The notes: generated by a model not told the origin, from the letters alone. Shown: positions 1 to 24,025, counted from the stretch's first letter. The stretch: DNA of 24,025 nt from Bugula neritina (GCA_964035545.1 CAXIUT010000057.1:366928-390952); one strand, 5' to 3'. Numbers and translations: made by a program.

Positions 1-70
1 CCCAACCCCAACCCCAACCCCAACCCCAACCCCAACCCCAACCCCAACCCCAACCCCGAACCCCAACCCC
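1..70. repeat. Left telomere, distal tract (CCCCAA)n
   Basis: C4A2 repeats from base 1, with one variant unit CCCCGAA at 54-60. C4A2 is the Tetrahymena-type ciliate telomeric repeat. Confidence 0.97.
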
Positions 71-111
71 TTATTGTTATTGATAAAAATATTGATGATA
101 AAAATATTGAT
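71..111. other. 41-nt non-telomeric insert within the left telomere, containing a 15-nt tandem duplication
   Basis: TTATTGTTAT+TGATAAAAATATTGA (81-95)+TGATAAAAATATTGA (96-110)+T, flanked on both sides by C4A2 tracts in the same orientation. Confidence 0.9.
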
Positions 112-198
112 CCCAACCCCAACCCCAACCCCAACCCCAACCCCAACCCCAACCCCAACCCCAACCCCAACCCCAACCCCAACCCCAACCCCAACCCC
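112..198. repeat. Left telomere, proximal tract (CCCCAA)n, about 14.5 units
   Basis: Uninterrupted C4A2 repeats ending at CCCC 195-198, followed by 45 nt of unique sequence before the first ATG. Confidence 0.97.
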
Positions 199-3590: not shown

Positions 3591-5064
3591 ATGCTCAATA
3601 ATAATCACCTACTCGTTCTTCTCTCTTGCATATTTATCTCCATCTCCTGCCAAAATGACTAAGACATCATCGATATCAGCAACATCACTGTATTTCCACA
3701 AGACTACAGTCATAATATCAGAGCAGGATATCTCAATGTCACTCCCAACAATCAAGCTCTCTACTACATCTTCTGCTAAAGGTATTTCCTCTTTCATGCA
3801 GTCAAGACAACCCAGACAACGATCCGGTCATTCTCTGGCTGAATGGAGGACCAGGATGCTCTTCACTAACAGGTTTTTTCACGTAAAACGGGCCATTTCT
3901 TTTCAAGTAGAATGACCCTTCAATGATGTATCATAACTAACACGCCTGGAACAAACATGCCAACGTGATATACTTATAAAGTCCAGGAACAGTAGGCTTT
4001 TCAACAGCAACAGACAAATACAAAACTAGTAATGACACTTCAGTAGCAAAAGACAACCTCAAAGCACTGCAAATGTTTTTTGACTATCACAAACACTTCT
4101 CAGGCAATGATTTCTATTTAGCTGGGTAGAGTTATGCAGGCATCTACATACCGAGACTAGCAGAATAAATATTGAATTTCAATGACGGTGCACAAGATAC
4201 AAGGATAAATCTACGAGGAATACTGATAGGAAATGCCTGTACTCATCCCTACTAGTGCTATACAGCTAAATACTATTCAAGATTTAGTACATAATTCTGG
4301 TACACTCGAGGATTCATGGATGACAGCCTCTACAACCAGTATCAAAATACATGTATAAAATCATAAAGTTCAACTAGTTGCATAGCTATTCAAAAAACTA
4401 TCAGTGATAACTTTATCAATACTGGAGCCAATATCTACAACATCTATGCCAAATGCTACAAGCCAATCTACCCTCCTCAATATTAATCAATATTCATCAA
4501 GTACTAGGAAGTGATGAACAAATATCATTAGAAATAACATAGTTTAAAACATCCTTTGAGATGCACTGATGCCATTGGACCACTAACTGTCCTTAATACT
4601 AATTAGTTTAGATCTGCATTCAAAGTCTAAGAATTCAATGATACCCTTTTCTGGACTCCTTGCTCAGATGTATTTCACTAATAATCAAGAAACTCAATTA
4701 TACCATCGAATCTAAAGCTGCCTACTCCACTCTGCCTACTCTAGTAACAGCAGGAATCAAAATATTCTACTTCTCTGGGGATCTAGATGCCATCGTTCCC
4801 ATCCAAGGAACACTCTACTGGTTCGATAAGTATCGTAAAGATCATGGAATGCCCATCAAGAGGAGTTGGAGACCCTGGGTATCTACCAGTCAAAATATAT
4901 CAGGTATGCTATGGGAGCTAGATGCTCTGACTTTGGCGACAGTTAGAGGAGCAGGACATATGGTACCTTCAGACAAACCAGCAGAAGCAGAATAAATACT
5001 AAATGTCTTTCTTGAAAGAACCACCTGGAAATATCCAGACTACTACTTGGAGACTTCAATATGA
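3591..5064 (+). CDS. Serine carboxypeptidase, peptidase family S10, with signal peptide, 477 aa, 2 introns
   Basis: Signal-like [20 protein letters not shown]. Motifs [29 protein letters not shown], catalytic [16 protein letters not shown] and [10 protein letters not shown]. Introns at 3782-3801 and 4670-4689; TGA at 5062-5064. Confidence 0.97.
3782..3801 (+). other. 20-nt spliceosomal intron (carboxypeptidase intron 1)
   Basis: GTATTTCCTCTTTCATGCAG; removal gives YYIFCES|QDNPDNDPV. Confidence 0.92.
4670..4689 (+). other. 20-nt spliceosomal intron (carboxypeptidase intron 2)
   Basis: GTATTTCACTAATAATCAAG; removal joins WTPCSD to KLNYT in the frame carrying GDLD and GAGH. Confidence 0.9.
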
Positions 5065-5299: not shown

Positions 5300-8200
5300 T
5301 CACTGCTGGTAGTACTAATTTTGTATGTTGATGACATCTTTCCGGTGTTTATTATAATTTTTATCTCTATTGATTTTACTACTACTATTGTTTTCCTCTT
5401 ATTTCTTTTTTTATTTATTGATGTCAGATTGATAGTTGATTTTAGCCATTTCTGACGACTTCTTTGTGATATCACTATTAAACACTATTTTGCTTTAAGA
5501 ACTATCAATAGTATTTTTGGACTACAACTCTATAAATAGTTGTTCCAATTATGAAGACTTAGATATCTATCCGGCCAGTAACGTCTTATTTTTTTATTAG
5601 AGATCACCTGTTTTTCTATTATAAAGAACCATAAATAGATTTTAGTGTTTTCTTTTCAAACTGATTCCTTTTTATAGATTTTATCTTTCGACCAAACAAA
5701 CAATCACATGTCTGCCTATATTTTTCCTAATTTCTGTTTCCATGTTGCTGTCGCAGGTGTAGCTTTGCAAGATAAGATGATATTTAACAGCCATAACATT
5801 GAATTTATTTCTTTTATTAAAATGAACCAACAAAACAATCAAATTCTTATTCAGTGACCTCTTTAGCTTATTCAACTCGCCCATATCCCATCGATTCAAC
5901 CTAGTTACAGAATTCACACTTAGTGTCTGATTACTAGTTGAACTCACTGATAACCCAGAATCATACTTTATCTTTTACTATTTAAAAGATGGAACTTATA
6001 GCTAGAATTTAGATAGATATTGAGAGACTTGGGAATTTTATAACTTCCTTATAGATGATACTCTGGTATTTTAAAACAAATTAGTTATCGAATTCAAATT
6101 GATGTCTGTTAGCTTCGGAAGTAGTACCTTCAAGTTGTTGCTTTTAAATACTATCGACATCTGCTACTTCTACACCAGTTAGTTAAATAACTACATTGGC
6201 ACCTATCGCATCATCAATAACAACAAATTACCACCGTCATGTAGCTTCTTCAACTCACTTATACTGCTATACAAAACAGGGTAAATCTTTTAGTTTTGAG
6301 AACAAGCAGCCAACAACTACCTCTTCTGCTGCATCTACAAATTCTGATGATACACGATATTTATTTTAGAATAATCGTCCAGCCGAACCATCTTGCATGA
6401 CTACTTATCAGGCTACTACTACCTATCTCGACTCTATATAGGCAAATTACCTTCAGACATCTTTATACTTGACGCGTTGCTACTCTGATGACCACTCTCG
6501 ATCTTCAACTAGTTTTTATCACCTTAAATTTCTTTCTATTCCGATTTTATCTATTCTTCATGCTAAGATTATTGTATTTTTTAAAGATATGATGACTTTT
6601 TACTATAACTTTTCTTTATATGCATCAAAAAAGGCTCTATCTCACTATACCTAATATACAAATGCTAGCTATCATCCACATACTCATGATTTAAATAAAC
6701 TAGCTTCAACCTTTGATTCTAAACATGATATTTAACCAATTATTGAGGTTACTTTTGAGTCTAACTGACAAAAACAACAACTTGTTTATTAGGATTATCA
6801 TTAATATACTATATTACTTGTTAAATAGTCAACTAAAGAAGCTAGCTTTACTTCTATTGCACAATACTAGATATCTAGCTTTAATCTTTGAGTTTAATGA
6901 AGCTGATTTAAAGCAGACTGTCAAGTATAGTTGATACCATATGATTAACTTGTTTAATTTTATTGATTAATTTAACAACATCAGTTTCAGTATTCAGATT
7001 ACCATCCTAATCAATCCAATTTTAGTCCTCCAAACAAAACCAGCGATATCTATCTCCATATCTAGCACGTAATATATCTATCCATCGATTATTGACTTCA
7101 CTATACACCACCACGCCTATAGAATTCTCAAGTCTACTACTCAGACTCAACTAACTTTGATAATAACTCTAAAATAACTATTTAAATATCTCTGTTTTAG
7201 ATGAATATTTTCTAAACTATCTCATCTGAGGATTCTTCTGCATATAAATAGTAAGATTTAACTATAAAATCTCATCTTCTCCTTGGAATAACCAGTTGCT
7301 TTGACCTTTGTATTTTGTTAGTAAAAACTAAAATAGGTCACTCCAACCTTCGTATCTTATCTTATTATATTAATCATAGCTTTTGTTAAGAATTGTCGAC
7401 AGTTCAGATGTTTTAAAAAATATATTTTTGTTGAAAGTTTGCTATTAAGGGTAGATTGTAGAGACTAATGGAAGAGTTAGAGGACTAAAACCACTAAAAT
7501 CATCATGACTCAATGTATTTACCTGAAAAGAAGGTTTTTCTTTATCTTATTGAACCTATATTTTCGAAAAAGAATTTATCTTTTTATTAATTGTTTGAAT
7601 TGGTTCAGGTTACCAAGAATCAATAGTAAACATCTTTTAGTCAACCAATTGCGGTATCTCAAGGTCAACCAATTGCGGTATATCAAGGTCAAGTATTGAA
7701 GGAGCAAACTGAATAGGCATCTTTTGAACCTAAAATTCAAGAGATTTGAAAGGAGGATAATGATTACAGGCAGCTACAGGATATTAAAAAGGCTTAGATT
7801 ATTGACTACCTATTTTATGCATTATTTGATTAACTGAATTTATATTGAGAGAAATAGGTGAGATTTATACTTATTTTCTTTATATCATTCTAGAACTAAC
7901 TTCTTTTCTTTATATCATTCTAGAATTTACCTCTTTTCTTTATATGTATTGAGGAGTAATCTATTTTCTTTATATGTATTGAGGAGTAACATTTTTTCTT
8001 TCAAGACATCTAGAATTAACCTCATTTCTTTATATGTATTTTGGAGTAATATCTTTTCTTTCAATACATCTAGAATTAACCTCTTTTCTTTATATGTATT
8101 TTGGAGTAATCTCTTTCCTTTATATGTATTGAGGAGTAACAGATCTTCCAGAAGAGATAGTTTTTTGACTACTTCTTTCTTAAAACAAAGACTATCTAAA

Positions 8201-9313
8201 CGAATAATCAGATTCTTATCCAAAAAAACTTCTTAATTATCCAATAATATCAGATGATTGATCAGATATTTCCCATAACTTCCATTTACCTTTTTAATTA
8301 TTAACTAAAGCTCTGAATTTATTTATCTCATTGTGATACTTCCTACATATTATAATTTTATTCGTCTCCTAACTCAATTCATTCTCTGTTCTACTTTGAT
8401 TCTGCAAAGACTCTGTCTGAGGGTAGTAACTCGAACAGCCTCTGCTAGAATAGGATAGATCTTGGGAATATATATCTTTCGTAGTACTATAATAGTTGCT
8501 ATTGAGGAGTTATTTACGTTGTGATACTCTTTGTTTTTTGATCATGATAATAACTTCCTAAAACTGTCTAAAGGAATCCACTTTAAAGTTATTTTTATTG
8601 GTTCTTTTTTGATAGGTTAGCAACATCTTGGATATCATTTACTAACAAATAAAATGGATTTGTTTTTATTCCTATCTTCTAGAACTTGAATTAGTATTGC
8701 TCCAATTCGACAACTACTTCTACAAAATAACAGTCTAATCCTGTCTTTTTATATTTGGTTATTCCTAATTTATTTTGATTGATTTTTGTCTGATGATTTC
8801 TTTTACTCCATCCAAAAAGGCTATATCTTCAGTCCAGTAGCAATATATATACTTTTACTATTTTTTATTGTTCATTTTATTAACCTACCTCAAATAGCAC
8901 TTCCTCTCAACCAATGAAAATACCACCAACTTTAACTAACTTTGAGCACTTAGCTAGTTCTGAACAAAAGAACAACAAGACTACAACAACTAGTAGTCGA
9001 TAATGATGCAATACAAATGACCCTTTCGATATGAGTATTTGAGCAGCTCTCGGTAATTACTAAAAAATACTACATTCTCTCCATAGTATCCCTTCAACTA
9101 CTCTACCTTCAGTCGAGTTGTCTGCTTTTATAACAATTATTCGAAAACCAGTAATGTAGCCATTTTACCCACATCCAAACTATTCATTCTCACCATTGAC
9201 AGTCTACCCTGACCTATTTGACTTCTAGTAGATAAATTAGACCAACTCTGATGCTTCAATAACCTTCCTTTCCTGTCGTTCTGACACTCAGACATCGCGT
9301 ATTCCCAACTCAT
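5300..9313 (-). CDS. Uncharacterised ~1337-aa protein with ~7 degenerate alpha/beta (receiver-like) modules and a central repeat linker; paralog of the adjacent 3008-aa protein
   Basis: One frame with no TGA from ATG9313 to TGA5300-5302; an upstream in-frame ATG at 9415 would give 1371 aa. Includes ORFs 9137..9325 and 5681..5947. Shares blocks with the neighbour, e.g. IIICRKYHNEINKFRALV vs IIICHGYHSEIEKFRALV, LDDYSKINIVY vs LDDYSKVRIVY, and LLLLMMREVP vs LLLLMMKEVP. Confidence 0.85.
7640..7693 (-). repeat. 24-nt in-frame coding duplication (DL[D/E]IPQLV x2)
   Basis: GTCAACCAATTGCGGTAT(C/A)TCAAG repeated on the plus strand. Confidence 0.85.
7871..8140 (-). repeat. Nine tandem 30-nt coding repeats (10-aa unit, e.g. 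ITPQYIERKE / VNSRCIERKD)
   Basis: VTPQYIERKE, ITPKYIERKE, VNSRCIERKD, ITPKYIERNE, VNSRCLERKN, VTPQYIERKE, ITPQYIERKE, VNSRMIERKE, VSSRMIERKE, all in frame in the 5300-9313 gene. Confidence 0.92.
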
Positions 9314-9483
9314 TATTATATTCACAGCGGAAAAACTATAAAACCATTAATAACTACAATAAAAGTATTAGTCAACACAACCACAACTCAACTCGTAATA
9401 TAAAACAACACCCATTAGTATCTATCATATTCAATATTATTTTAGAAATATATATTGTTATAATTAGAGATGATCACAAGGCA

Positions 9484-12400
9484 TCAACCTGGAAAATATT
9501 CATCGTTTCTAGCAGCCGGAGGACTAAGAGTCTACATGCGACTGGTCAACTTGCTCTTGCTTCCACTCTTCATATACCTTCTGGAATAGGTCGATTATTT
9601 TGATTTGGGTGGGACAAAGTCTCTAGCAAAACGAGGTGTAGTGCCAAAAGTGTTGGGCTAGTATTTTTGAATATATCTTTTTCCTTAGATATTTTTAGTA
9701 GCTTTATACTTAGTGCCCACATCTTCATAAGGCATAGCTAGCGAATACTTTTGGAACTAGTCCATGATAAACCTCTCGAGATCATCTTTCTTAAAAGTAG
9801 ATAGCAAGTTCTTCACCCGAGGATTATCTCTTAAATCTTCAGGAGGATTAAATCTTATCACATAAATCAACTCTTTCTTCTTGCTGACTATCTCCTACAA
9901 ATAAGGAATGTCAGTGCTATTAGCTATCAATATGCTTGATGAGTTATTGTAGGTGTCAATGAGTCTTCTAAAATCGGGTACTGATTTGTAAGGCACAAAG
10001 TTAATGTTCGAAAAGTTTTATCCCAGCTTCATCCGAATATGATTATTGTCAGGTTACTTATAAAAAAGAAATGCCTTCTTAGATTTTTGGTTGCTCAAAC
10101 CTACAGAAAAACGTTCATTATTAGATAAATTCACAATAGATGTCTTCTTCATCTCAAATCGAGATGCAGCTCTATTACTCTAAGCATTAAATCTTATCCT
10201 CTCATTCTATTGATAAAGATCAGCGATTATCTTGTCCAACTATGAAATCTTCTTTATCTGACCAGACAAGTACGGTCGGTAAGCCTCGATTCCCTCGTCA
10301 TGAGGATTGTCAGATTATAGGACAAAAGCAGTTTGAGGATATTTCTTTTTAATCATGGGCACCTTATCCAACATATTTCTATCAACCACAGTTATAGTCA
10401 CGTTGTCCTTTCTATCTCGAATATCATTCTAAAGGTTCATAGAATTAGTATACCCCTGAACGAGCACATTGAATCTCTTGATGGCATCATCCACCTATCC
10501 ACGCTTATTGTTATCGACCACCAAAACTATCAAATCTCCTGTCAACCTCTGCTTGATCTTCTCTATCTAGTTCTACTGCAACAAATTGCCAGGATCGATG
10601 ATCGAATGCACCATCAGTCGAGTCACATTGTCCATATCAGCAGCCTCCCCCTCAAACTGATTCTGATATCTCTAGCCTTACCAGTCATCTGGTTTGGTTA
10701 TGGTCGGACGCTTATCTAGATAGGTCTAAAACAACTTCAAATACACATCTACCTGCTCATCACTCAAATATTTCAAATTGTCTCCTTATTGGTCAGGTTC
10801 GTCCTCCTCAAGGATAGTCTATAACCCCTCTATATCAGAATTCGACTTCTTGGGAACTATCATCTTCACCCTTCGCTTCTTTATTATAGTTTTATGCTGC
10901 TTCTCAACCACGTCCGCCAAAGCATGAGGCACTTCTTTCATCATCAAAAGCAACAAACTGTCAGACTACTTCATAAAGGTTTTTATCTCGTCCACATCTT
11001 TATACACAGTGGGATAGATCTTATTGTTCTTATCTGATGCAGATAGCAGTCTTCTCTTGCTCTAAAAATCAATATCACGGTCATACACTATTCTCACTTT
11101 AGAATAATCGTCCAAATTACGAAGACTAGTCAACTAATCCTCCACACCACTGCCCTACAACTTCCTTATCAACCCAGGTATCTCCTATTCTCTCATCATT
11201 GTCACATTGCCAATACTTTTAAAACGATCAGGCTCCTCTCCCACCACTATCACATAGTTCTCAGGATTCTCAGACAAAGCCACCATCCTGGGCGTCACCT
11301 CAGTTGATATTATCACCTGAACAGCACCACTTTCGCTAGCCGGAATGCTGCTCTGATTCGAAAAGAAAGTAGCCTTATTGGCAAAAAATTTGCCTACAGG
11401 AAATAAGTTCTTCAACTGATCATCGATATTCAACACGTAGTTCTTATTCGCTAGGATGTTCTATAGATTATTAGCAGGTTTTATGTTAGAATCCATACTC
11501 GGCAAAGGGTAGTCTTCTTCCTAGTTATCGACTCGAACAGACACCCTCTACTTCACATAGAAATTATCTTTGGGATTCGATTCTGTCCTTGTATTGACCT
11601 TCACTTCTAGCTATCCTCCTCCTCTATCGTAGTTATTGACTCTGGCATTGATGCGACTATTTTGAACGAGCTGACTATTGCTTGGTTTAAGATTGGAGCC
11701 AGGAATGATAAAGCTTTTTCTGTCAATATGATGAAATTCGACTCCTTAGCCAGGAATGCCTTTATTACATATGGCATAATTATTGAATATATTTTATATT
11801 TCCTGTTGCTAGTCCTAAAAGCACACTACATATACTTTTCTATACTTGCCTTTTATCTAAAAAGCTATATTTTCTACATCATCCATACTAACATAAACCC
11901 GATCATCCAATCCTCTCAACCGTCTCCTCTGAATCAAAGTCTGGACAGTCCTCTCTCCCTATCCCTCGTGATACACCATGAAATCTATTCTACCAGCACT
12001 TTAGACCTAGTTGATGTGTTTGATGACTGGATCTATTTAGTTAAATTTGATATAAAGGGGATTTTATTCATCAACAAAATCTATTTTGAGAAGAATCAAC
12101 TTTATCCTACCATTTACTTCATCAGCCTATGACATCAATGCCTGAGGAACGTGTTTTATATCTTTCGCCTAGACAAATAAGACCATCAATAGATTACTTT
12201 ATTTTTAGTAGATTTGCAAGAGTTCCTATTTTGTTCTAAAATAAATATTTCTGGCTTTATCCATAGTGGCCTTATTACTCAAGTAAAAATACTTCATATC
12301 GTTATAAGCATCAAAAACATTCTTATTAAACATAGTAGCAAAAACATCTTGCTTCCTCCTCAAACGAACATCCACCACGTCCATTAGTATCCCCTCAGAA

Positions 12401-15400
12401 TCGATCCATCTCTAGCTATTATCAGTCAATCCTATCCACCGATGCTTGTTGTATTTATTCCGCAAAGTTCCCATCCGAAATTGATCACTCAAATTGAACA
12501 AAACCACACAAGGTGATTCTTGTTTCTACAAATATCTAGATAAATCCATATAGTCAGAATAATAAGTCTAAGGCAAATCCCAAAAATCATGCATCACTAT
12601 TCTAGATTTCCTAGCCACCACCTACTAGTTCAAATACCCTTTCTATGAGAAGTTGTTCTTGAAATCTTTCATGTACTATTTGTTTTATAAGTAAACTACA
12701 GGATGCAGAGGTACTAGTTCAGGTCTTCCTGGAGAGTTCTTAATTAACCAGTTACTTTTCCCCTTAAAAAGAGTCACCAGGTATCTAAAGAGTTAAGCCC
12801 AATCTTTGAAAAATATTTTTTAATAATCCTCGTAATCAGAGTCAAAAACCAATTCCTCCTCTCCATAGCTATAAAATAAATATCTAAATTTATCATGATA
12901 AGGAGGCACTGGTTTGCTAGGCAGCATCTTTCTCAGGTACTAGTGTCCATTAGGTCCATAATAAATCGAATAGATCCAAATTCTGTAGAGATACAGCTAA
13001 TCTTCTGGAAGTTGACTATCAGTATCGACCAGTAGATAGCAAGATGGACTAATTTTAGGTTACAATTTGTATTGATGATAATTTTGTCTACTGACTACCA
13101 GAATAATAAAAGTATTTTAAGTATGCAAGCACTTATAGGTATCAGCCTAGGTCTGATACTGTTAAACACTAACGTAACTCGATTTTAGTCCTTCGTATTT
13201 TCTGAAAAGATGCGATGGGACAAGTATCAGTATATGTCCGCAGTGATTCCAAAAGCGAGGTAGGACTTCACACATGTAGGGCAGCTAATATCCTCTGATT
13301 CGATAAGGTCTTAAGAAGTGTTTCAGTTTGTCGTGATTGTCAATATGAAAGTTGTCATCAAAGATAAAATATTACATCCTTCCTCCCAGTTTGCCCTTCA
13401 TCGTCTTCAGAATAGGATCATACTTGCGATACACATTTGATAAAAATACCACTATCTTGTCATAGCCATTCAACTTCTGACCATTATTCTTAGAATACTA
13501 CTATAAATCTACCTCTGTGCGATAGGCCAGCAAAGTTACCATAAACTGATCCGGCTATAAATTCCTTTTAAGCATTTGACCGATCTGATTGAACTAGTAG
13601 TTGCTGGGATGGATTATTGCCAACTTCTGCTTTATTTTCTCATGACACGGTATCTACTTTTGTGGAAACGGAAGACCCACAAAACTGTCAGGTTCGCTTG
13701 TTATCATAGCTATCTCTCTTGTCGGGGCATGATCTACTCCACTATTCAAAATGCTGACATGAATACTACCCTGAGAGTCTTTTGTTTTTTTCAATACCTA
13801 AAAACCATAAGATTGAGGAGGAAGGTCTACCTTCAATAAATTGATATTAGCGAAAGAAGGAGGATTACTATTTAGGGTGCCATTCATCACTTTCACTTCA
13901 CATATTTTTTTTTACTATGCTTTAATACAAAAAGTAGGATAGAAAACCAAACAAGAATAAGCCAAAGACAAGGGAAAAGATGAATAGTGGTCAATACTAT
14001 TAAGAAGTTGATCAGCCTTACCAATACTAACTTAAAGGGGTTCTATTGGTTCAATAGGTTATCCAGTGATGGGTATCTGGTTCATAAAATGTTTGAACTA
14101 AATAGTTTTTCTGGCAATAAACTATCTATTTCCAGTACTAGTATAAGATTTGTCATTTCTGCAGTGATCATTAACAATAAAATAGCTAATATCCTGACGA
14201 TTCAAAGTCTATAACGTCTGTCTTTCATTTTAGGATGGCAATATGACATGACTAGGTTCTTTTATCTTTCTAAGCTAATCGCCCAAATGATGGTACACAT
14301 ACACTATGATATTAGGATTTCTCTTATTTATATTTATCAACTACTATCTATATTTCTGGGTAGGACCCTGCTCACTTATATACAAATTGTACTTTCCTCT
14401 GTAATTTAAAGCTTTGTTATATCTATTCTAAGGCATATTGAACAAATAAGTCAATAGCTATCTTCTATCGTTGGTTTATAACAACCAATTCCTATCACCA
14501 CTGTCTCCTTTAGATATCTTCAAATCTGATGTTTTCATATCGATAAATTTACAATCACGACCATACCGTTGGTTGAAGTCGTAAACCTGTCGACCTGACT
14601 GCTCATCACCCACAAAGACATGCAAATAGTCATAATTACTAGTGACCTTCAAAAGCTACGGTAAGGCATTCACACGATATCCATTATGATTTATAATCAA
14701 AGAATCGTTTTTACTTGTCAAGGCACTCACCTCCTGCGAGGTCAACTTATACTAGTCCTGAATGTACAGCTATATCAACTAGTGATTGATGTTTTTTTAG
14801 AGTTGAGCTTCAGGTTTACGAATATTGAACCTCAAATATCTTAAATAATCAGTTACTTCTGAAGGATAAGTACCGATAAAGAGCTAGTTAGAATCGTCAA
14901 CCAATTTACTTTAATCAAGATTTCTAAAATCATACTACTACTTCCGCCCAGCTACATAGATCAGTTTAACACAGTTCATCCTACCAAATAAATTCAACAT
15001 ATTCTGTCTATCTCTATACGGACCCACCACATAAAACATCTATTTTGAACTCTTCTGCACCATCTCGTTCAAGTCCCCCAGTGACTTAGGGTACTAAACA
15101 GTTGCCTTTAAGACGCTTTTCCACTTACCTACTTCTTGCTAGTTGATGGCCATGGCATTTCCATCAGCATTTTTGAGAATAGCCAAAACAACAGGATGCC
15201 CCACACTCGACTGGTAAAATATATTCTTGTCCCTTCCATATATATTCAACAAGTATTTCTAGATCTCCTTCTTCTAAGAATTCCTAAAAACTACTCGGTT
15301 CTTCAAATTCGGATGCACGTTCTCCCCACTCTCTATTATATACTTAACGTTCCCCTTCTTATAGTTCTCCAACTTGTCCAGGCATTTGCTGTATTCATTC

Positions 15401-18400
15401 AAAGTCCTCACATCCCTAACGATTATCCAAATCTGGTGTCTGCCCCACTCTCTCTCCCGCCCGACTATCCGCTTCACTTCTTCCTTATCACTCGCATACT
15501 AAAATGTAAATTTATTAGTCAGTGAAGAATACTTATCCAAAAAATAGTAATAATGCAAAGTATTCCTATCTATAACCACGTGAGGTGTCAAATAATTATA
15601 CTATATTGGATTTACAGTCGTATTGCATAACCATGTGCCAGTTTGCCTATAATTTTTAAAAGATTCTCTGATGCTAGAATTAGCCTTATCCACCTTCTTA
15701 GACCCATGCTCCTTTATTACTAATATTTTTATGTAATAGTTGTTGCTTTTGTATTTTTGCTGCTCAATTGTCCTCTATATATCAGCCACAGCCACCCTGC
15801 TGGTGTCTTCATTGATAACGATATAGTATTTAAACAAAGGACTCTCTTAGTCGATAGTTTGAACAAGGTCATCCAAAGCTTTAAAATGTATTTTGTTAGC
15901 GACATTGTTTCTATCGCTATCTTTACGATTCCAAACCTCATCGACCATCTCACGACTACTCCTATCCTTCTCGTCATAAAACACAAAAATACTTTCATCA
16001 ATAAAAATCGAATCGAAAGATGGAGAAGGACACCGACCGATTATATACTCCTAGATACGCTACCACCGACTCGATACAAACTTAAACCTCTCATACCGGT
16101 TATGTTCATCAACTAACTAAGCAAACTATCGAGGAACATCACTGTATATTATAAACTACTGCCTCAACTATCCTTTCTAGTTCAAAGCCAGCTCCTTCAT
16201 AAACTTCAACTCGCCCATCAGCTCTTTCTTCCTGGCAGGAGATTCATTTGAGTTATACGCCCAAATAATAAAAGCCAAAGGCTATTCAGCTTTATTCAGT
16301 ATCCTCAGCTAGTTAGGATTCTTGTAGTACTATATCTTAATATCACCATAGAAATGTTTATGCAGTCTATTTTACATCTTCTGTGATTATTAGTCTTTCA
16401 AGTTAGCTGGCAATCTCACACTGATCATATTTCCCTGTCTAAAATCTATGTATTTAGGCAGTTCTCTATTCTTGCGAACAAAAGATTGATCCAATGTCAA
16501 CTAGTTGTAACATTAGTTCTCAATAACACTCACCTAAGGATCGATTTGCTTTATCAAATCGTATATTAAAGCTTTAGGACCAGACGTAAATACTTTCACC
16601 TCCGGCTTAGGATTCTAGCGATCAGTTATATTCAATATATACACCTTCTAAAACTGCTATAAAACCCTCTGGGCGTCTCGAACAGTATAATCATTGGTCA
16701 CCACTATCACACTATCTTTAAGAGTAAGAGTCTCAAGAGACAACTTCAACCACTACTTATCCATATATGTCCTTTTCTTCAATCGAGGAGTATCAGCTAT
16801 ATACGGCTGCAAATCATCCAACTCATCAGCAATCGACTCCTGAATCAGCAAATATACATTAGTGCCAGTTAGTCCTTCAAAGGGATGGAACAGTTTGTCT
16901 CTTTAAGTCATTATATTCTATAGATCATCATTTGGTCGACCCCTCACATCACTCATACTCGACTGTCCCAGTATATTGCTACTCAAAAATACATTACTGC
17001 CGTGTTTTCCGACAGCACTAGATATAAATTTGACATTCTACACTCCCTATCCATTCCGATAACTAGCTATAAACTCATTAATCGCCCTAGTGTACTCAGC
17101 AGTAAAAGATCTGAATCCTCCAGGAACCATAGCTATCGTGAAGTTGTCCAGTGAGTTGACTCCCTCTCTCAAAAAAAGAGAAAACTAGTCCACATCGTTA
17201 TAAATTATCAACTACATATGGTTTAAGGTGTTTCTATGGGCATCAAACAAACTTATTGCTGCTTAGTCATTTGCATGAGCCAAAATTATCAAATGCTTGC
17301 TATGGATTATTCTATCGTATTACTCACTATCCAGTCTTTATAAATTTTTAGCCTATTAGTTTAGAAAATCTCTCAACCTCACCATGAAATCAGAAGATCC
17401 CTACTAAATTTACCACAACAACCAGTTATTGTACTTCTGTGCCCTCACTAAAGCTCTAAACTTCTCTATCTCAGAATGATAGCCATGACATATGATGATG
17501 TTCAAATCGTTCTTATCCAACTTGTTGATTGCTTTGATCGATGAACCCAACACAGATGTACTTACCTGGGATCCTACCATAGCCTACATGATTCCGCTCT
17601 TCATAGATACTGGTTAAAAGTTAAACTAGCTCATTATTTTAGAAGTAGCCTTACGAGCCACATCCATCTACTTTGTCTGAGCCACCTCTCGCTCTCTGAT
17701 CTTTCTTAACACGTCCTAGAAGTCCTTGAAAGAGTATATTTGCAGCCATGAAGACTTGCTCTTCTTGCGGTATGTTTTATATATTCCTTTGAACTAATCT
17801 TCCATCTTCTGCTAATAAAAGAAATGAAGCGTTCTCTTTTTAATCTTCTTCCCTGCATATTTGTTGGTCAAAGCCCATGTCTTTACATGTTTATTCTCCT
17901 CTCTGAGTCTGAAATCAAGTTGCTGTTCGATAGCTCCTACCATTTTGTCAGGATAGTCTTTTTATTAAAGATAGAAGTATTCGATATAGTCCGGAATGGC
18001 TTATATTCTTTTTTTGCTTCTAGCTTTGATCTCCTTATCATACTCCTGTTTTCTCAATAATCCATAAACAAATATTCTGACGCGGTTGCTATTTTCTTCT
18101 CTTTCCTGCTGGGCAAAAGTACTCGCCCAGTTGAGATCAAACTTGGGCACAATGATATAATGCAGATCATTATCGTTGTAGTTGTCTTTAAGCAGCTACT
18201 TATGATCTTTAAAAGTCTTAATCTAAACTTTATCTCCGAACTTATCGAGCAACAACTATTTGAAATATGCCAACCCATCGACACGATTGTCCTACAGAAA
18301 TTGATGAATCTTGACATGGACATACTTCTTATCATTCTGTCCCTGTAAGTGAGGTAGAGTCGATCTGATATGACTATCTATCTTTTGAACTGTCGACTGG

Positions 18401-18510
18401 ATCCGAGAGTTACTTTTAGATAACAAGTGCTGTGAATTAAGTGCATTGGAATGCTGAGAGTGCATGTGATGATTCGAGTGCAGCTAGTCGTAGTTGCTGT
18501 TCTGGTACAT
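9484..18510 (-). CDS. Giant uncharacterised 3008-aa intronless protein built of ~20 tandem degenerate alpha/beta modules (CheY/receiver-like by pattern)
   Basis: I translated the whole frame: ATG18510, preceded by an in-frame TGA, to TGA9484-9486, 9027 nt with no internal TGA. Includes ORFs 15274..15477 and 11185..11436. A hydrophobic strand / helix / (Y,F)x(D,S,N,T)xx(E,D)(L,F) / hydrophobic strand pattern recurs roughly every 90-180 aa. The ORF is secure; the fold is an inference. Confidence 0.88.
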
Positions 18511-19006
18511 TCAAACCTAATTAATATAACCTTCCAAAAAAAAACGAAGAATCACTCATCACCAACAAACAACCAACCCATAACCACCTTACCCTACTCA
18601 CTGCCCACTGCCTTGATGCAGTCGCATATCTCTAAGGGGATCTATAACTGCTGGAGATGGTTTCTACTGGATTCCGTGTTAATTAAAGAGTCAAAAAAGC
18701 AATAGAATTATACCAGTAACGATGTGATATAAATAATCATGTTATCAAATAAAATGGTATCAAATAAAAAAATAATTGATAGAAGTGATAAGAATAATAT
18801 TAGAAAAGGTATTAAAAGCAAAATAAGGAAAAGATGATGATTGATATAATAATAATAAAGGGATATTTCTATTAATATTATGTTATTCTTAATTTAGTTT
18901 GATAATAAGTATAATTGACTCAGAAATTATCATTCAGTTCACTTTTCTTTTTTCTTTGTTTTGGAACAATGGTATATTCCTACTCCCAAGATCAGAACAG
19001 AAAAGA

Positions 19007-20555: not shown

Positions 20556-23500
20556 TCATTTCTTTTTGGTATACTTTTCTCTCAACTTCCTATCCTTCCT
20601 CTGCAGTATCTCCAACCTCTCCTTCTCATCCTGAGCCCGAGTCACCTCCTTTCTTCTCCTATACTCCACATCTTCTCTCCAATTAGAATCAGAAGGCAAC
20701 GGACTATTCTCATACTACAACACCACTGGATATTGTCTATCAAAATTCCATATCTCCTGCCCGCCATAACTCAAATACTTATTCCATATACCCGTCACCT
20801 TCCCATGATCTTGCACTATATCTTTCTATTCAATATCTTTTCTTTTTCCTTTGATAAATTTAGCCATAAATTACGGCTTTACCTCAAGTATTGAGCCTTA
20901 GATATAATCTGCAGGCTGGTCTTGTTTCCCCATAGAAAAAAACCCTTTCTTGAATTTGTCGTAATTGATTTCAACCAGTATATTGCTATTAGCTATCCAG
21001 TAATAAGCTATGTTATCAAAGATAGTTACATTTACCAACCATAGCAAATTTTCTAGTCCCAGTAGTCAACCCACTCAGCTCCCCTCCCGGTGTTATAAAA
21101 CATATCTCCATGCCATCATCGAACGTCACCCTGTATATACCATCATTAGTCCCAGTCCCGCTGTTAATACTCAACGACATCTTAGACTATATCTGAGCTG
21201 AAATAGCATAGTAGTACCTGTAACTGAATAGCCTCGACCTTTTAATATCAAGGCACCAATAGGAGGATGATGACTCACTTGCTAGGCATAGGCCGGACAC
21301 CCATTGATCCAACATTGAAAAGTCTAGCCCAATATTGGATTAAAGGGCTTTTACATGTTCAAATATAGAACAGAATTCGATACTCCGAATATTATGGTTC
21401 TGATCATGCGAGTTAACATATTTTATTTATGCAGATTTTATAAAACCAAAGGAGCATAGGAAAAACTATAAAGAAAACGTTACAAATTACTACAAGGCAA
21501 AAAGACATCAACAGGCAGACTGATACGAGTAATCGATTGTCCAGAAAATAAATTTTTAGCTATCTTAGTCAATACAAATTTAAGCACTCCTCTCTGATCC
21601 TATGTTTTCTTTTTATTGATAAAAAACAACCCTCCCTACTTCTAGTCCCGAATCCAATCATCTTTCCACACAGGATGAAGGTTATTATTATAGGGCGTCA
21701 TCAATTTAGGTTTCAGCTGCTAGGCTGGTTCGAGTAGCTGCTTCAGTTTTAAAAAGTGTTGATGAAGAATTATCATTCCCTCGGCATCTAGATCACGATT
21801 TACTTTGAATTACAAATATGGCAGAAGTTATTCCTTTGATATTTAGCCCATTTGCTACATAGAAGATTAGTTGAATTTCTTTATGTCCACCTTCTTTGGA
21901 CTATCAGTACTACTAGACGGTGATTATAATAAAGTTGGGGATTCTACTTTTACTGAGGTCTAATTCGATTTGTTCTCAGATTGAAGATTGACTATGATAG
22001 GTTCCACTTATTTCTTTTTAGTAAAATTTCTATTTTAACTAAACTCTTCTTTCTGTTCTTTGATGTCTTGTTCGATTCTAGTGATAGTTCTTCTTCTGGT
22101 TCTAATCTATTACTAAATCTAATTATTTTTATTTTTGCTTACATCCCAGCTAATATCAAAAAATTTATAATTATTTTCTTACTTACCTTATAACAACCCT
22201 TCCAATCCCTTCAAATACTTGATATTCAAATTAGTTTCTTGAATAGGATTAACAATTCCTTCATTTTTAATCTAACAATCAGCAATAACTTTGATTTGCC
22301 CTTCTTATTCAAATATGCCAAAGATGTTGCAAAAAGAGCCTCTAACTATGGTCAGAAAGGGAGGATAGTTGGCATTTTAAATACTTTTATCAATCATAAA
22401 TATTTTGTTGCCCTGACTGAATACGTGTCTGATAAAAATAAAATCTCTAGAACGGTATAATCTATTATAAGGTTTATTCACCTGATAAACCAATGCTGAG
22501 TTCTAAGAGGGAATAAAGGTTTTAAGTTGACTAGTCAGCACCTCACTGTTGTATTTCTTATTATTGTCAGGTTTAGATAAAAGCGATAGAACTTATGAGG
22601 CTGTTTTGTTTTGAAAAAGAAGAAGCAACTTCAAACGACGGTCCAGATAAGTGTGCTGGTATATTTTAAAACGAGATGTAGAATGAGTCAACTAGAAGTT
22701 CTAAAAGATTTATAGCTATTCTAACTAGTACTATGGGTATAGTTTGTGCAGAAGGTTGAAATTTTTCTTATTTATTTTATGCTATTATCTCTACTACTAT
22801 ATCATCTACGAGAATGTCTATGGCTATTCAAATATATCTCCCTCAATCAATTCGTCCACATAGGTCTTTATTTATACTTTTGATTGATATTGCTAAATCT
22901 ACTACTACAACTTTTACTTCTCCTTCAACTTGCCCTCCATCTACCTAGTCTTCAGCTTATCTTCTTTAGTTTGTTCTTTTTTTGAACCTGTATCTGAAAA
23001 ATCTATCTCACCTCCTTTGAATTAATCCAGAACATTACCAATCTACTCTTTTTAAAACTCTCCCCTATTGCTAGAACTCACCATCATACTCGCAGACAAC
23101 ATCTCCTTCTTCTCCATCTATTCCTTTGTCCTCTCAAGACCATTTCCAACATTATACATTGACTGACTGTATCCCTTACTCGAACTTTGTTTATCACTCA
23201 TAGATCTGAGTAAGGGCAAATTTTGATACAAAGTCAGATAAAACTCCCAAGCTCTAAAATCAACTGCAAACCGAATGGCTTTAACCCACTCTTTAAGTTT
23301 ATCTTCTTTAGAAAACCCAATATGAACAGTTCTAGACTTCTAGTGAGGAATAGTATTGATGGCCTCTAGCACAAAACAATGATACTCTTTATTTTTGGAC
23401 TTCCTCAGTATATAATGTCTAAAATCATAGCATTTAATTTTAGATTCTCTCTCGGCAAACATCAATAACTTGTCCATATCCAGTCGTAACTTCTTCTATT

Positions 23501-23855
23501 TCCATCTCTTTATATTAAATGAACGAGAATAACCTACAGCGTCAATCATACCCGAATAGATTGGCTTTGGAGGATCAAAATTTTTATTCACCCATTGCTT
23601 TGTATACCCAACTATCAAACAGTAGTATTAGATTTTTTATTATCGAGTTAGTGTAGTCAGAACTGTTCTGAACTATTTGGTTAGTTATGCTTTGCGATTC
23701 TTTTTGAGGAGTTGAGTTTTATCATTGAGATTGAAATCCAAATGAATAGAATACTACAGGTAATCAAAGACTGCACCCAGGTGCTTTGGTATGTCCCAAG
23801 TTGCACGAGCAGCCGATTCATCCACAAACATCTGGTATAGCTACATACTACTCAT
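20556..23855 (-). CDS. Oxysterol-binding-protein-related protein with PH, START and ORD domains, ~1085 aa, 2 introns
   Basis: ORD signatures ISLPVDVF, KPFNPILGETF, EQVSHHPPI, LPSDSNWRED and AQDEKERLEILQRKDRKLR. PH: KRWKEKKLRL...GFSKEDKLKEWVKAIR. START-like: YQVNKPYNRLYRSRDFIFIR...DKSIENANYPPFLTIVRG. Introns at 21198-21217 and 21008-21029; TGA at 20556-20558. Confidence 0.93.
21008..21029 (-). other. 22-nt spliceosomal intron (ORP intron 2)
   Basis: GTAACTATCTTTGATAACATAG contains an in-frame TGA; removal gives MVGKS|YYW and restores the LPSDS frame. A 28-nt alternative donor is possible. Confidence 0.8.
21198..21217 (-). other. 20-nt spliceosomal intron (ORP intron 1)
   Basis: GTACTACTATGCTATTTCAG; removal gives GRGYSVTA|QIESKMSL. 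Confidence 0.88.
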
Positions 23856-23950
23856 CTTTATCAGGTTTTATTATTATTATTTTCAAGATAAAAACAACAT
23901 TCTGATCAATCATAATCACACAAACTATATTGAATATTAACTATCATATC

Positions 23951-24025
23951 GGGGTTGGGGTTGGGGTTGGGGTTGGGGTTGGGGTTGGGGTTGGGGTTGG
24001 GGTTGGGGTTGGGGTTGGGGTTGGG
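23951..24025. repeat. Right telomere (GGGGTT)n
   Basis: Uninterrupted G4T2 repeats to the end of the window, in the orientation expected for a right chromosome end. Confidence 0.98.

Follow-up and report, generated by a model that had tools for sequence, protein, structure and literature searches.

A peritrich gene for a 353-kDa protein predicted to carry about twenty divergent alpha/beta modules in series

A 24,025-nt stretch from a Bugula neritina assembly (GCA_964035545.1, CAXIUT010000057.1:366928-390952; hereafter the window) contains a 9027-nt minus-strand frame that raises a simple question: what kind of protein does it encode, and in which organism? The initial annotation, made by eye from the sequence, described an intronless orphan composed of about 20 degenerate receiver-like modules, acting as a scaffold or a multi-input sensor. 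The answer given here proceeds from the gene and its code to its relatives, its internal repetition, and the origin and possible function of the modules.

Gene frame and genetic code

The 3008-codon frame at 9484-18510 is open when TAA and TAG are read as sense, as the initial annotation had it. It holds 150 of these codons in frame (107 TAG and 43 TAA), and its sole TGA among 3009 codons is the last one; each other frame of the same interval contains between 24 and 126 TGA codons. A further TGA lies directly 5' of the ATG (18508-18510). At the 150 TAA/TAG codons of the gene, the orthologues described below (450 comparisons) show Glu encoded by GAA or GAG 239 times, TAA or TAG 67 times, Asp 50 times, and Gln 15 times. 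Strain variants of the gene include GAG/TAG and TAA/GAA changes. Judged by the orthologues and the GAG/TAG strain polymorphisms, TAA and TAG encode Glu in the host, which supports the translation table (table 30) chosen at the outset. Standard-code gene callers are blind to genes of this kind.

Strain SNPs in the coding sequence comprise 26 synonymous and 12 non-synonymous changes, with 26 of the 38 at codon position 3, and the gene is under purifying selection. The frame is collinear in four species and free of intron-like insertions, which agrees with its description as a single intronless frame; Logan contigs on the gene are also collinear and without joints, a pattern that is uninformative about transcripts, and a search of RNA runs found none that contains the gene. 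The sequence comparisons identify the frame as a true gene of a peritrich ciliate, protein-coding and without introns. The conserved element GGAAGG-TTATAT...TTTGA lies at equal spacing from the ATG in the window and in orthologues L008, L020, and L022, and is probably a core promoter or a very short leader. The orthologues share the surroundings of the ATG and the position of the stop, and the C-terminal tail has 44 invariant columns in alignment A7.

Orthologues and a tandem paralogue

The label of orphan is refuted by full-length orthologues and a conserved tandem paralogue in several organisms that use the peritrich code. The full-length, collinear orthologues are L008 (3028 aa, 68% identity), L020 (3023 aa, 57% identity), and L022 (3006 aa, 51% identity), and partial orthologues are L018, L006, L014, and L024-L030. 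The orthologues sit in metagenome contigs, and all detectable relatives are on contigs with TAA/TAG as sense. The features of the family, namely a length of ~3000 aa, collinearity, TAA/TAG as sense, and the tail KYEPNTFGTTPRF..DFVPPKSKESTYSR, were found in L008, L020, L022, L018, L006, L014, and L023-L030. Public databases hold the family only as fragments of 40-480 residues. Among other candidate relatives, three that the representative search gave (P0005, P0008, and P0019) were rejected as low-complexity repeat false positives, and L031 as a GC-rich bacterial one.

The paralogue lies 70 nt downstream of the large gene (Table 1), and the order of the pair is kept in two other species (L008 and L020). 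Its three blocks correspond, in the large protein, to residues 100-387, 1878-2191, and 2459-2789. The paralogue also contains a 30/90-nt tandem repeat at 7872-8140. Searches for Pfam families, sequences of solved structures, and named proteins gave no match for stop-free pieces of the window and its orthologues, on which the Pfam, PDB, and AF2 analyses were run. A Walker A motif is absent from all four full-length sequences, which also have no conserved GxGxxG. No conserved CxxC motif was found in the orthologues, nor any conserved TM-like segment, in agreement with the initial reading of a protein free of transmembrane segments. These comparisons indicate that the protein, its orthologues, and the tandem paralogue form a new peritrich family outside all described families. 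Purifying selection maintains this family in several environmental lineages of peritrichs, common inhabitants of activated sludge and freshwater.

Table 1. Features of the large gene and its surroundings, in window coordinates and in gene order. Hydrophobic runs are given in residues relative to the anchor motif, and register refers to alignments between candidate modules.
Feature	Coordinates	Strand	Anchor (aa)	Observations
Conserved element GGAAGG-TTATAT...TTTGA	18511..18540	-		directly 5' of ATG
Large gene, complete CDS	9484..18510	-		3008 aa, 353 kDa, pI 6.1; ATG 18508-18510, TGA stop 9484-9486
Module 1	18034..18330	-	97	anchor IKTFKDHKELL; runs -35, +19, +47; in-register hhalign matches to modules 5, 8, 15
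Module 2	17551..17847	-	258	runs -30, -3, +78; within block common to paralogue
Module 3	17020..17316	-	435	runs -29, -3; in register with module 18
Module 4	16585..16881	-	580	runs -29, +20; invariant Asp after beta3-like run
Module 5	16144..16440	-	727	runs +18, +58; in register with modules 1, 14
Module 6	15703..15999	-	874	runs -34, +19, +51
Module 7	15313..15609	-	1004	runs -19, +22, +51; in register with module 20
Module 8	14908..15204	-	1139	runs -32, +18; in register with module 16
Module 9	14491..14787	-	1278	runs -33, +17; invariant VGDE after beta3-like run
Module 10	14113..14409	-	1404	runs -31, -3, +37; in register with modules 14, 18
Central stretch, ~aa 1425-1650	13561..14238	-		least conserved, no anchor motif; 33-43% invariant columns
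Module 11	13339..13635	-	1662	runs +23, +50; highly conserved NGYDKIVV...RMEYF.FDD
Module 12	12976..13272	-	1783	runs -24, +17, +40; in register with module 19
Module 13	12628..12924	-	1899	best off-diagonal profile match is module 20, in register
Module 14	12379..12675	-	1982	strand/helix alternation in low-confidence AF2 model of orthologous piece
Module 15	12058..12354	-	2089	runs -17, +17, +47; best local AF2 confidence, pLDDT 73-84
Module 16	11710..12006	-	2205	runs -30, +20
Module 17	11146..11478	-	2381	only module modelled at usable confidence
Module 18	10822..11118	-	2501	runs -29, +17, +47; top module by number of in-register matches
Module 19	10201..10566	-	2685	initially called the most receiver-like; sequence confirmed
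Module 20	9808..10104	-	2839	in register with modules 7, 13, 18
C-terminal tail, EGKRYIQKYEPNTFGTTPRF..DFVPPKSKESTYSRRYMKS...EYFPG	9487..9693	-		basic, Ser/Thr/Tyr/Pro-rich, highly conserved
Tandem paralogue	5300..9415	-		~1371 aa; 27-30% identity to large protein in three collinear blocks

Recurrence and predicted fold of the modules

All 20 motifs reported as recurrent occur letter for letter when TAA and TAG are read as Glu, within ~20 nt of the positions first given, and the resulting anchors are spaced 83-258 aa apart. Around them, conserved hydrophobic strands form a lattice at about -30, 0, +19, and +47 residues relative to the motifs. Hydrophobic runs conserved in four species occur 17-36 residues ahead of the motif in 16 of the 20 modules, 15-24 residues past it in 13, and 37-58 residues past it in 12. 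The lattice total is 41, whereas 5000 random anchor sets average 20 and never exceed 35; the strands originally described as flanking the motifs are real. In hhalign comparisons of the module profiles, 38 of 180 pairs align in register over at least 25 columns, against 2/180 for column-shuffled and 8/180 for reversed controls; since the anchors were picked by eye for similarity, part of this signal exists by construction. A self-comparison free of anchors places 8 of 12 off-diagonal matches on the motif lattice. Strand lattice and profile register together support the proposed chain of ~20 alpha/beta modules, one of which (module 17) is modelled at usable confidence.

The model of module 17 is without two of the five helices, and the AF2 model of modules 14-15 (mean pLDDT 49) splits into two alpha/beta units. 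Sequence searches of the PDB with a piece and with profiles A2 and A4 returned nothing below E 0.06. ESM Atlas feature searches with a 91-aa piece, P0022, and the orthologous 281-aa piece of the central stretch gave no usable lead; the last also has no Pfam match, and the Atlas's own model of P0022 has a pLDDT of 0.37. Structural comparison with a HAD-type phosphatase core (trehalose-6-phosphate phosphatase, 5dxl) gives an rmsd of 3.7 A, at a match score that equals that of the receivers and falls within the range of chance arrangements. Unlike this enzyme, the modules have no DxD motif, cap domain, or conserved catalytic residues.

Origin of the modules and possible function

A lattice of this kind might also be produced by a collection of unrelated Rossmann-like alpha/beta domains of different origins and possibly different functions; motif and lattice would then show only the beta-alpha period of 25-30 residues that doubly wound folds have in general. 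Direct comparison of the modules is compatible with such a collection: pairwise BLAST between masked segments gives no signal above shuffles, an ungapped Gibbs motif search reaches an unconvincing 28.5 bits against 27.1-28.1 in shuffles, and MAFFT yields no usable alignment of the 20 modules. The best module-to-module profile E-values are 0.001-0.07, with no single pair significant, the best E of the whole-protein profile self-comparison is 0.07, and structural neighbours span HAD, SIS, Piwi-MID, and PTS domains besides receivers. However, the in-register alignments, which cover 25-88 columns and involve 17 of the 20 modules, far outnumber the 2-8 seen in controls, and beta1, beta3, and beta4 keep closely similar distances to the motif from one module to the next. 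A collection of unrelated domains seems rather unlikely. Far less probable still is that the modules are true receiver descendants, some of which (such as module 19) still accept phosphoryl groups within a multi-input phosphorelay sensor. Receivers are indeed the most frequent structural neighbours of the module 17 model, and six modules fall into the expected register when aligned to the receiver profile, though at noise-level scores. However, a PF00072 profile run over six frames of the genome with stops read through has its only match on a bacterial contig. Scanned against Pfam, 20 stop-free pieces, among them the P0011 region with modules 17-19, return nothing at E up to 10. Against 29 true receivers from five bacterial genomes, the 20 module profiles stay at control level in hhalign except for one local 45-column match.

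In module 19, the two Asp residues on which its initial description as receiver-like rested, one after beta1 and one after beta3, are each kept in 6 of 7 sequences, and a basic residue follows beta5 in most; however, the module lacks the DD pair, varies at the S and K positions, and has lost both the beta3 Asp and the Lys in the most divergent orthologue, and its hhalign probability against receivers is 0.3%. Of the 13 modules that can be scored after the beta3-like run, only 3 have an invariant Asp there, which bears out the earlier observation that most modules lack the phosphoacceptor Asp; after the beta1-like run the count is 2 of 16. With nothing found by either profile and the acidic pocket not conserved, kinship of the modules with receivers is not supported. 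The assembly's only receiver sits on a Thiothrix-like bacterial contig, and a loose first-look search of the 216-Mb assembly for HisKA (PF00512) gave no match, leaving its absence unproven; on these two results the idea of a multi-input sensor is likewise not supported.

The explanation to which we incline, with slightly more confidence than doubt, is a peritrich gene in which UAA and UAG encode Glu and whose product would be a 353-kDa soluble protein of ~20 very divergent alpha/beta modules in series. Each module would span ~100-150 residues in the order beta1-alpha-beta2-(short helix)-beta3-alpha-beta4, forming a three-layer alpha/beta domain of flavodoxin/CheY-like shape; that all modules share one fold is our inference. 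A small number of linkers, either acidic or of low complexity, and a single central stretch with little conservation would separate the modules. The basic tail, which is strongly conserved and has abundant Ser, Thr, and Tyr, may be where docking or phosphorylation takes place. An ancient duplication of a single module within the protein is the most likely source of the array. Because no conserved phospho-acceptor pocket, nucleotide-binding motif, or catalytic motif is present, we infer a non-enzymatic scaffold, which could offer many contact sites to other proteins; the single ground for this function is that catalytic features are lacking. A more specific formulation is tentative and, taken whole, somewhat doubtful: a peritrich-specific 350-kDa array of ~20 CheY-shaped pseudo-receivers, produced by ancient serial duplication, accompanied by a conserved, shorter tandem paralogue, and acting in signalling or cell structure as a multivalent scaffold.

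If the modular reading is true, the family is undescribed, with no Pfam family, named relative, or solved relative, and its architecture of ~20 tandem flavodoxin/CheY-shaped domains per chain is unusual; we know of no flavodoxin-like domain for which such an architecture has been described. It would also offer a case study in how far the members of an array can diverge while the fold is retained. The large protein is a candidate component of peritrich-specific cell structures, and one could picture it in an organelle such as the myoneme/spasmoneme, stalk, scopula, or oral apparatus, with rigid, bead-like modules and an anchoring tail. Its great size, its freedom from enzymatic motifs, its purifying selection, and the confinement of every detectable relative to contigs with the peritrich code (TAA/TAG as sense) would suit this role, and the ciliate contractile systems reportedly contain giant lineage-specific repeat proteins, such as GSBP1/2 of Spirostomum. 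However, the giant spasmin/centrin partners known to us are described as arrays of short binding repeats, not alpha/beta domains, and the peritrich restriction rests on searches that do not reach long relatives in other ciliates. A role as an organelle component is accordingly improbable.

Comparison with known systems places the proposed scaffold apart from CheY-like receivers (PF00072) and plant PRR pseudo-receivers. The modules have no profile similarity to these domains and no conserved acidic pocket, Thr/Ser, or Lys; a single chain carries ~20 copies, against the one, two, or three usual for receivers; and a loose search detected no histidine kinase partner in the genome. With Spirostomum GSBP1/2, the protein has in common that it is a very large, lineage-restricted, and internally repetitive ciliate protein without enzymatic domains, an analogy of kind only; a relation in sequence was not detected. 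Scaffold proteins with small alpha/beta domains in tandem are also known, such as TopBP1 with its BRCT arrays and collagen VI with its vWA arrays. The modules differ from both in length and strand pattern, and neither a BRCT nor a vWA signature, nor any Pfam match, was found in them. As a comparison of architecture only, the likeness lies in the many Rossmann-like alpha/beta copies set along a large, non-enzymatic binding platform.

The large gene and its relatives

The large gene is the longest frame of the window by a wide margin when TGA is scanned as the sole stop. Its 3009 codons include 107 TAG, 43 TAA and a single TGA, which is the last codon, and the remaining five frames of the same interval contain 24–126 TGA each. 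The long TGA-free frame described in the initial annotation is therefore present. Roughly 14 true relatives, nearly all of them short fragments, emerged when the longest stop-free piece (91 aa) was searched against 1.84 billion representatives. One of them, P0001 (70% identical), has Glu exactly at the positions of TAA or TAG in the window.

The contigs encoding these fragments carry full-length collinear orthologues, of 3028 aa (68% identity to the large protein; loci L008/L009), 3023 aa (57%; L020/L021) and 3006 aa (51%; L022), together with partial orthologues (L018, 57%; L006, 50%; L014, 32%; L023–L030, 49–76%). All orthologues, full-length and partial, contain in-frame TAA/TAG codons. The 150 positions occupied by TAA/TAG in the window correspond, across the three full-length orthologues, to GAA/GAG Glu 239 times, TAA/TAG 67 times, Asp 50 times and Gln 15 times. 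In Logan contigs of near-identical strains, 38 differences from the window are listed for the large gene. Under table 30, 26 of these are synonymous, and third codon positions account for 26. Among them are GAG/TAG and TAA/GAA exchanges, which provide evidence at the population level for synonymy of TAA/TAG with GAA/GAG in this genome.

In all four species the stop occupies the same position in the alignment, and the upstream GGAAGG-TATAT(A)-TTTGA element stands at the same distance from the ATG. This element may be a core promoter of peritrichs, with only a very short leader behind it. Orthologues differ by few indels, and comparison with them revealed no window-specific insertions resembling this genome's tiny introns. 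Taken together, the orthologues, code evidence, strain polymorphisms, conserved ATG context and stop, and scarcity of indels show that the large gene is genuine and subject to purifying selection; on comparative evidence it is also intronless, as first described. The gene turned up in no RNA run, so that its single transcript is a prediction.

The protein had also been described as an orphan, a status contradicted by its full-length orthologues and by a tandem paralogue that begins 70 nt past its stop. The paralogue shares 27–30% identity with the large protein in three collinear blocks, corresponding to modules 1–2, 13–15 and 18–19, and the large-then-small gene pair recurs in L008 and L020. 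The 216-Mb assembly yielded no additional copy. A tandem repeat inside the paralogue codes for about nine RKE(I/V)(T/N)P(K/Q)YIE-like units and is absent from the large gene. No named protein or Pfam domain occurs among the relatives, and every relative detected sits on a contig using TAA/TAG as sense, within a search whose scope did not extend to long relatives in other ciliates.

Features of the window
Feature	Position	Strand	Description
Left telomere	1-198		(CCCAAC)n
Serine carboxypeptidase gene	~3659-4927	+	Peptidase_S10, E 2.6e-12 on a 56-aa piece
Paralogue	5300-9415	-	Immediately downstream of the large gene
Repeat in paralogue	7872-8140	-	Periods of 30 and 90 nt
Element upstream of the paralogue's ATG	near 9416-9450		TATATATTT...TTGAAT, similar to that of the large gene
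Large gene	9484-18510	-	Sole TGA is the last codon
Search query	11188-11460		Longest stop-free piece
Strain exchanges	15267 and 17964		GAG/TAG and TAA/GAA, near-identical public contigs
Upstream element	18511-18540	-	GGAAGG-TATAT(A)-TTTGA, directly 5' of the large gene's ATG
Intergenic strain difference	18734		27-nt insertion and 3-nt deletion
Oxysterol-binding-like frame	21174-23882	-	Long, TGA-free, with EQVSHHPP fingerprint
Right telomere	23951-24025		(GGGGTT)n

Chromosomal setting

Telomere repeats cap both ends of the window, which is a complete macronuclear chromosome of 24 kb. Within contig C66 of the source assembly (L032 and L033) it is bordered on both sides by 200-N gaps, followed by the telomeres of neighbouring chromosomes, so this "contig" is in fact a scaffold in which small chromosomes have been concatenated. 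A serine carboxypeptidase (S10) gene also adjoins the orthologue in L006 and L021, and local synteny is thus conserved. For the frame with the oxysterol-binding fingerprint, Pfam Oxysterol_BP matched a 36-aa piece at E 0.0023, below the family cut-off. This frame extends to its lower boundary without reaching the expected domain end, pointing to an intron or a change of frame at 21174. The intergenic difference upstream of the large gene occurs in one public contig (run X2); the same comparison showed no indels in the coding region of the large gene.

Modularity

All 20 listed motifs were found exactly in the translation with TAA/TAG as Glu, within ~20 nt of the coordinates first assigned. They span aa 97 to 2839 at spacings of 83–258 residues. 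The proposal that they mark about 20 tandem modules fared differently by method. Segment-versus-rest BLAST gave 36 matches at E<1, against 26–43 in shuffles, Gibbs sampling was scarcely above shuffles, and no usable MAFFT alignment of the modules was obtained. Orthologue profiles, in contrast, placed 38 of 180 module pairs in register (offset of 4 or less over at least 25 columns), against 2 for column-shuffled and 8 for reversed profiles, a signal that is in part built in because the anchors were chosen for likeness. The in-register pairs involve 17 modules, and their alignments reach well past the 11-residue motif. Anchor-free self-comparison of the whole profile yielded 12 distinct off-diagonal matches, eight of them on the motif lattice, with a best E-value of only 0.07. 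Independently of these comparisons, hydrophobic runs conserved in four species cluster at residue offsets of about -30, 0, +19 and +47 relative to the motifs. They total 41, whereas 5000 random anchor sets average 20 and never exceed 35.

Receiver kinship and candidate function

The modules had been interpreted as degenerate receivers forming a scaffold or multi-input sensor. PF00072 matched neither the window, including with stops read through, nor any of 20 stop-free pieces, modules 17–19 included. A receiver profile built from 29 bona fide receivers of five bacterial genomes scored at control level against 19 of the 20 module profiles, the lone exception being a local 45-column match at aa 1823–1867 (probability 42%). 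The receiver acidic pocket is not conserved in the modules, in line with the earlier proposal that most lack the phosphoacceptor Asp. The assembly's only PF00072 match lies on contig C300 (L001), in a 261-aa response regulator that is free of stops and has a C-terminus of AraC type. Its 72% identity to one from a Thiothrix nivea MAG and the contig's GC of 0.48 indicate that the assembly includes a bacterial companion or contaminant. No HisKA domain was found in a coarse first search of the assembly. The modules thus resemble receivers in shape, while membership of the receiver family is unsupported and a phosphorelay role is unlikely. The interpretation first offered is borne out in part.

The large protein contains no Walker A, Rossmann glycine or CxxC motif and, as noted earlier, no conserved transmembrane segment or signal peptide. 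Conservation is fairly even along its length, peaking in modules 19–20 and in a basic C-terminal tail enriched in Ser, Thr, Tyr and Pro, which has 44 invariant columns among four species. Slightly more likely than not, the protein is a non-enzymatic, multivalent scaffold in which degenerate alpha/beta beads are combined with a tail for docking or phosphorylation. Service in a peritrich-specific structure is a possible role. The large protein represents a new, unnamed protein family, in which a known fold type occurs in an unusual array of ~20 modules.
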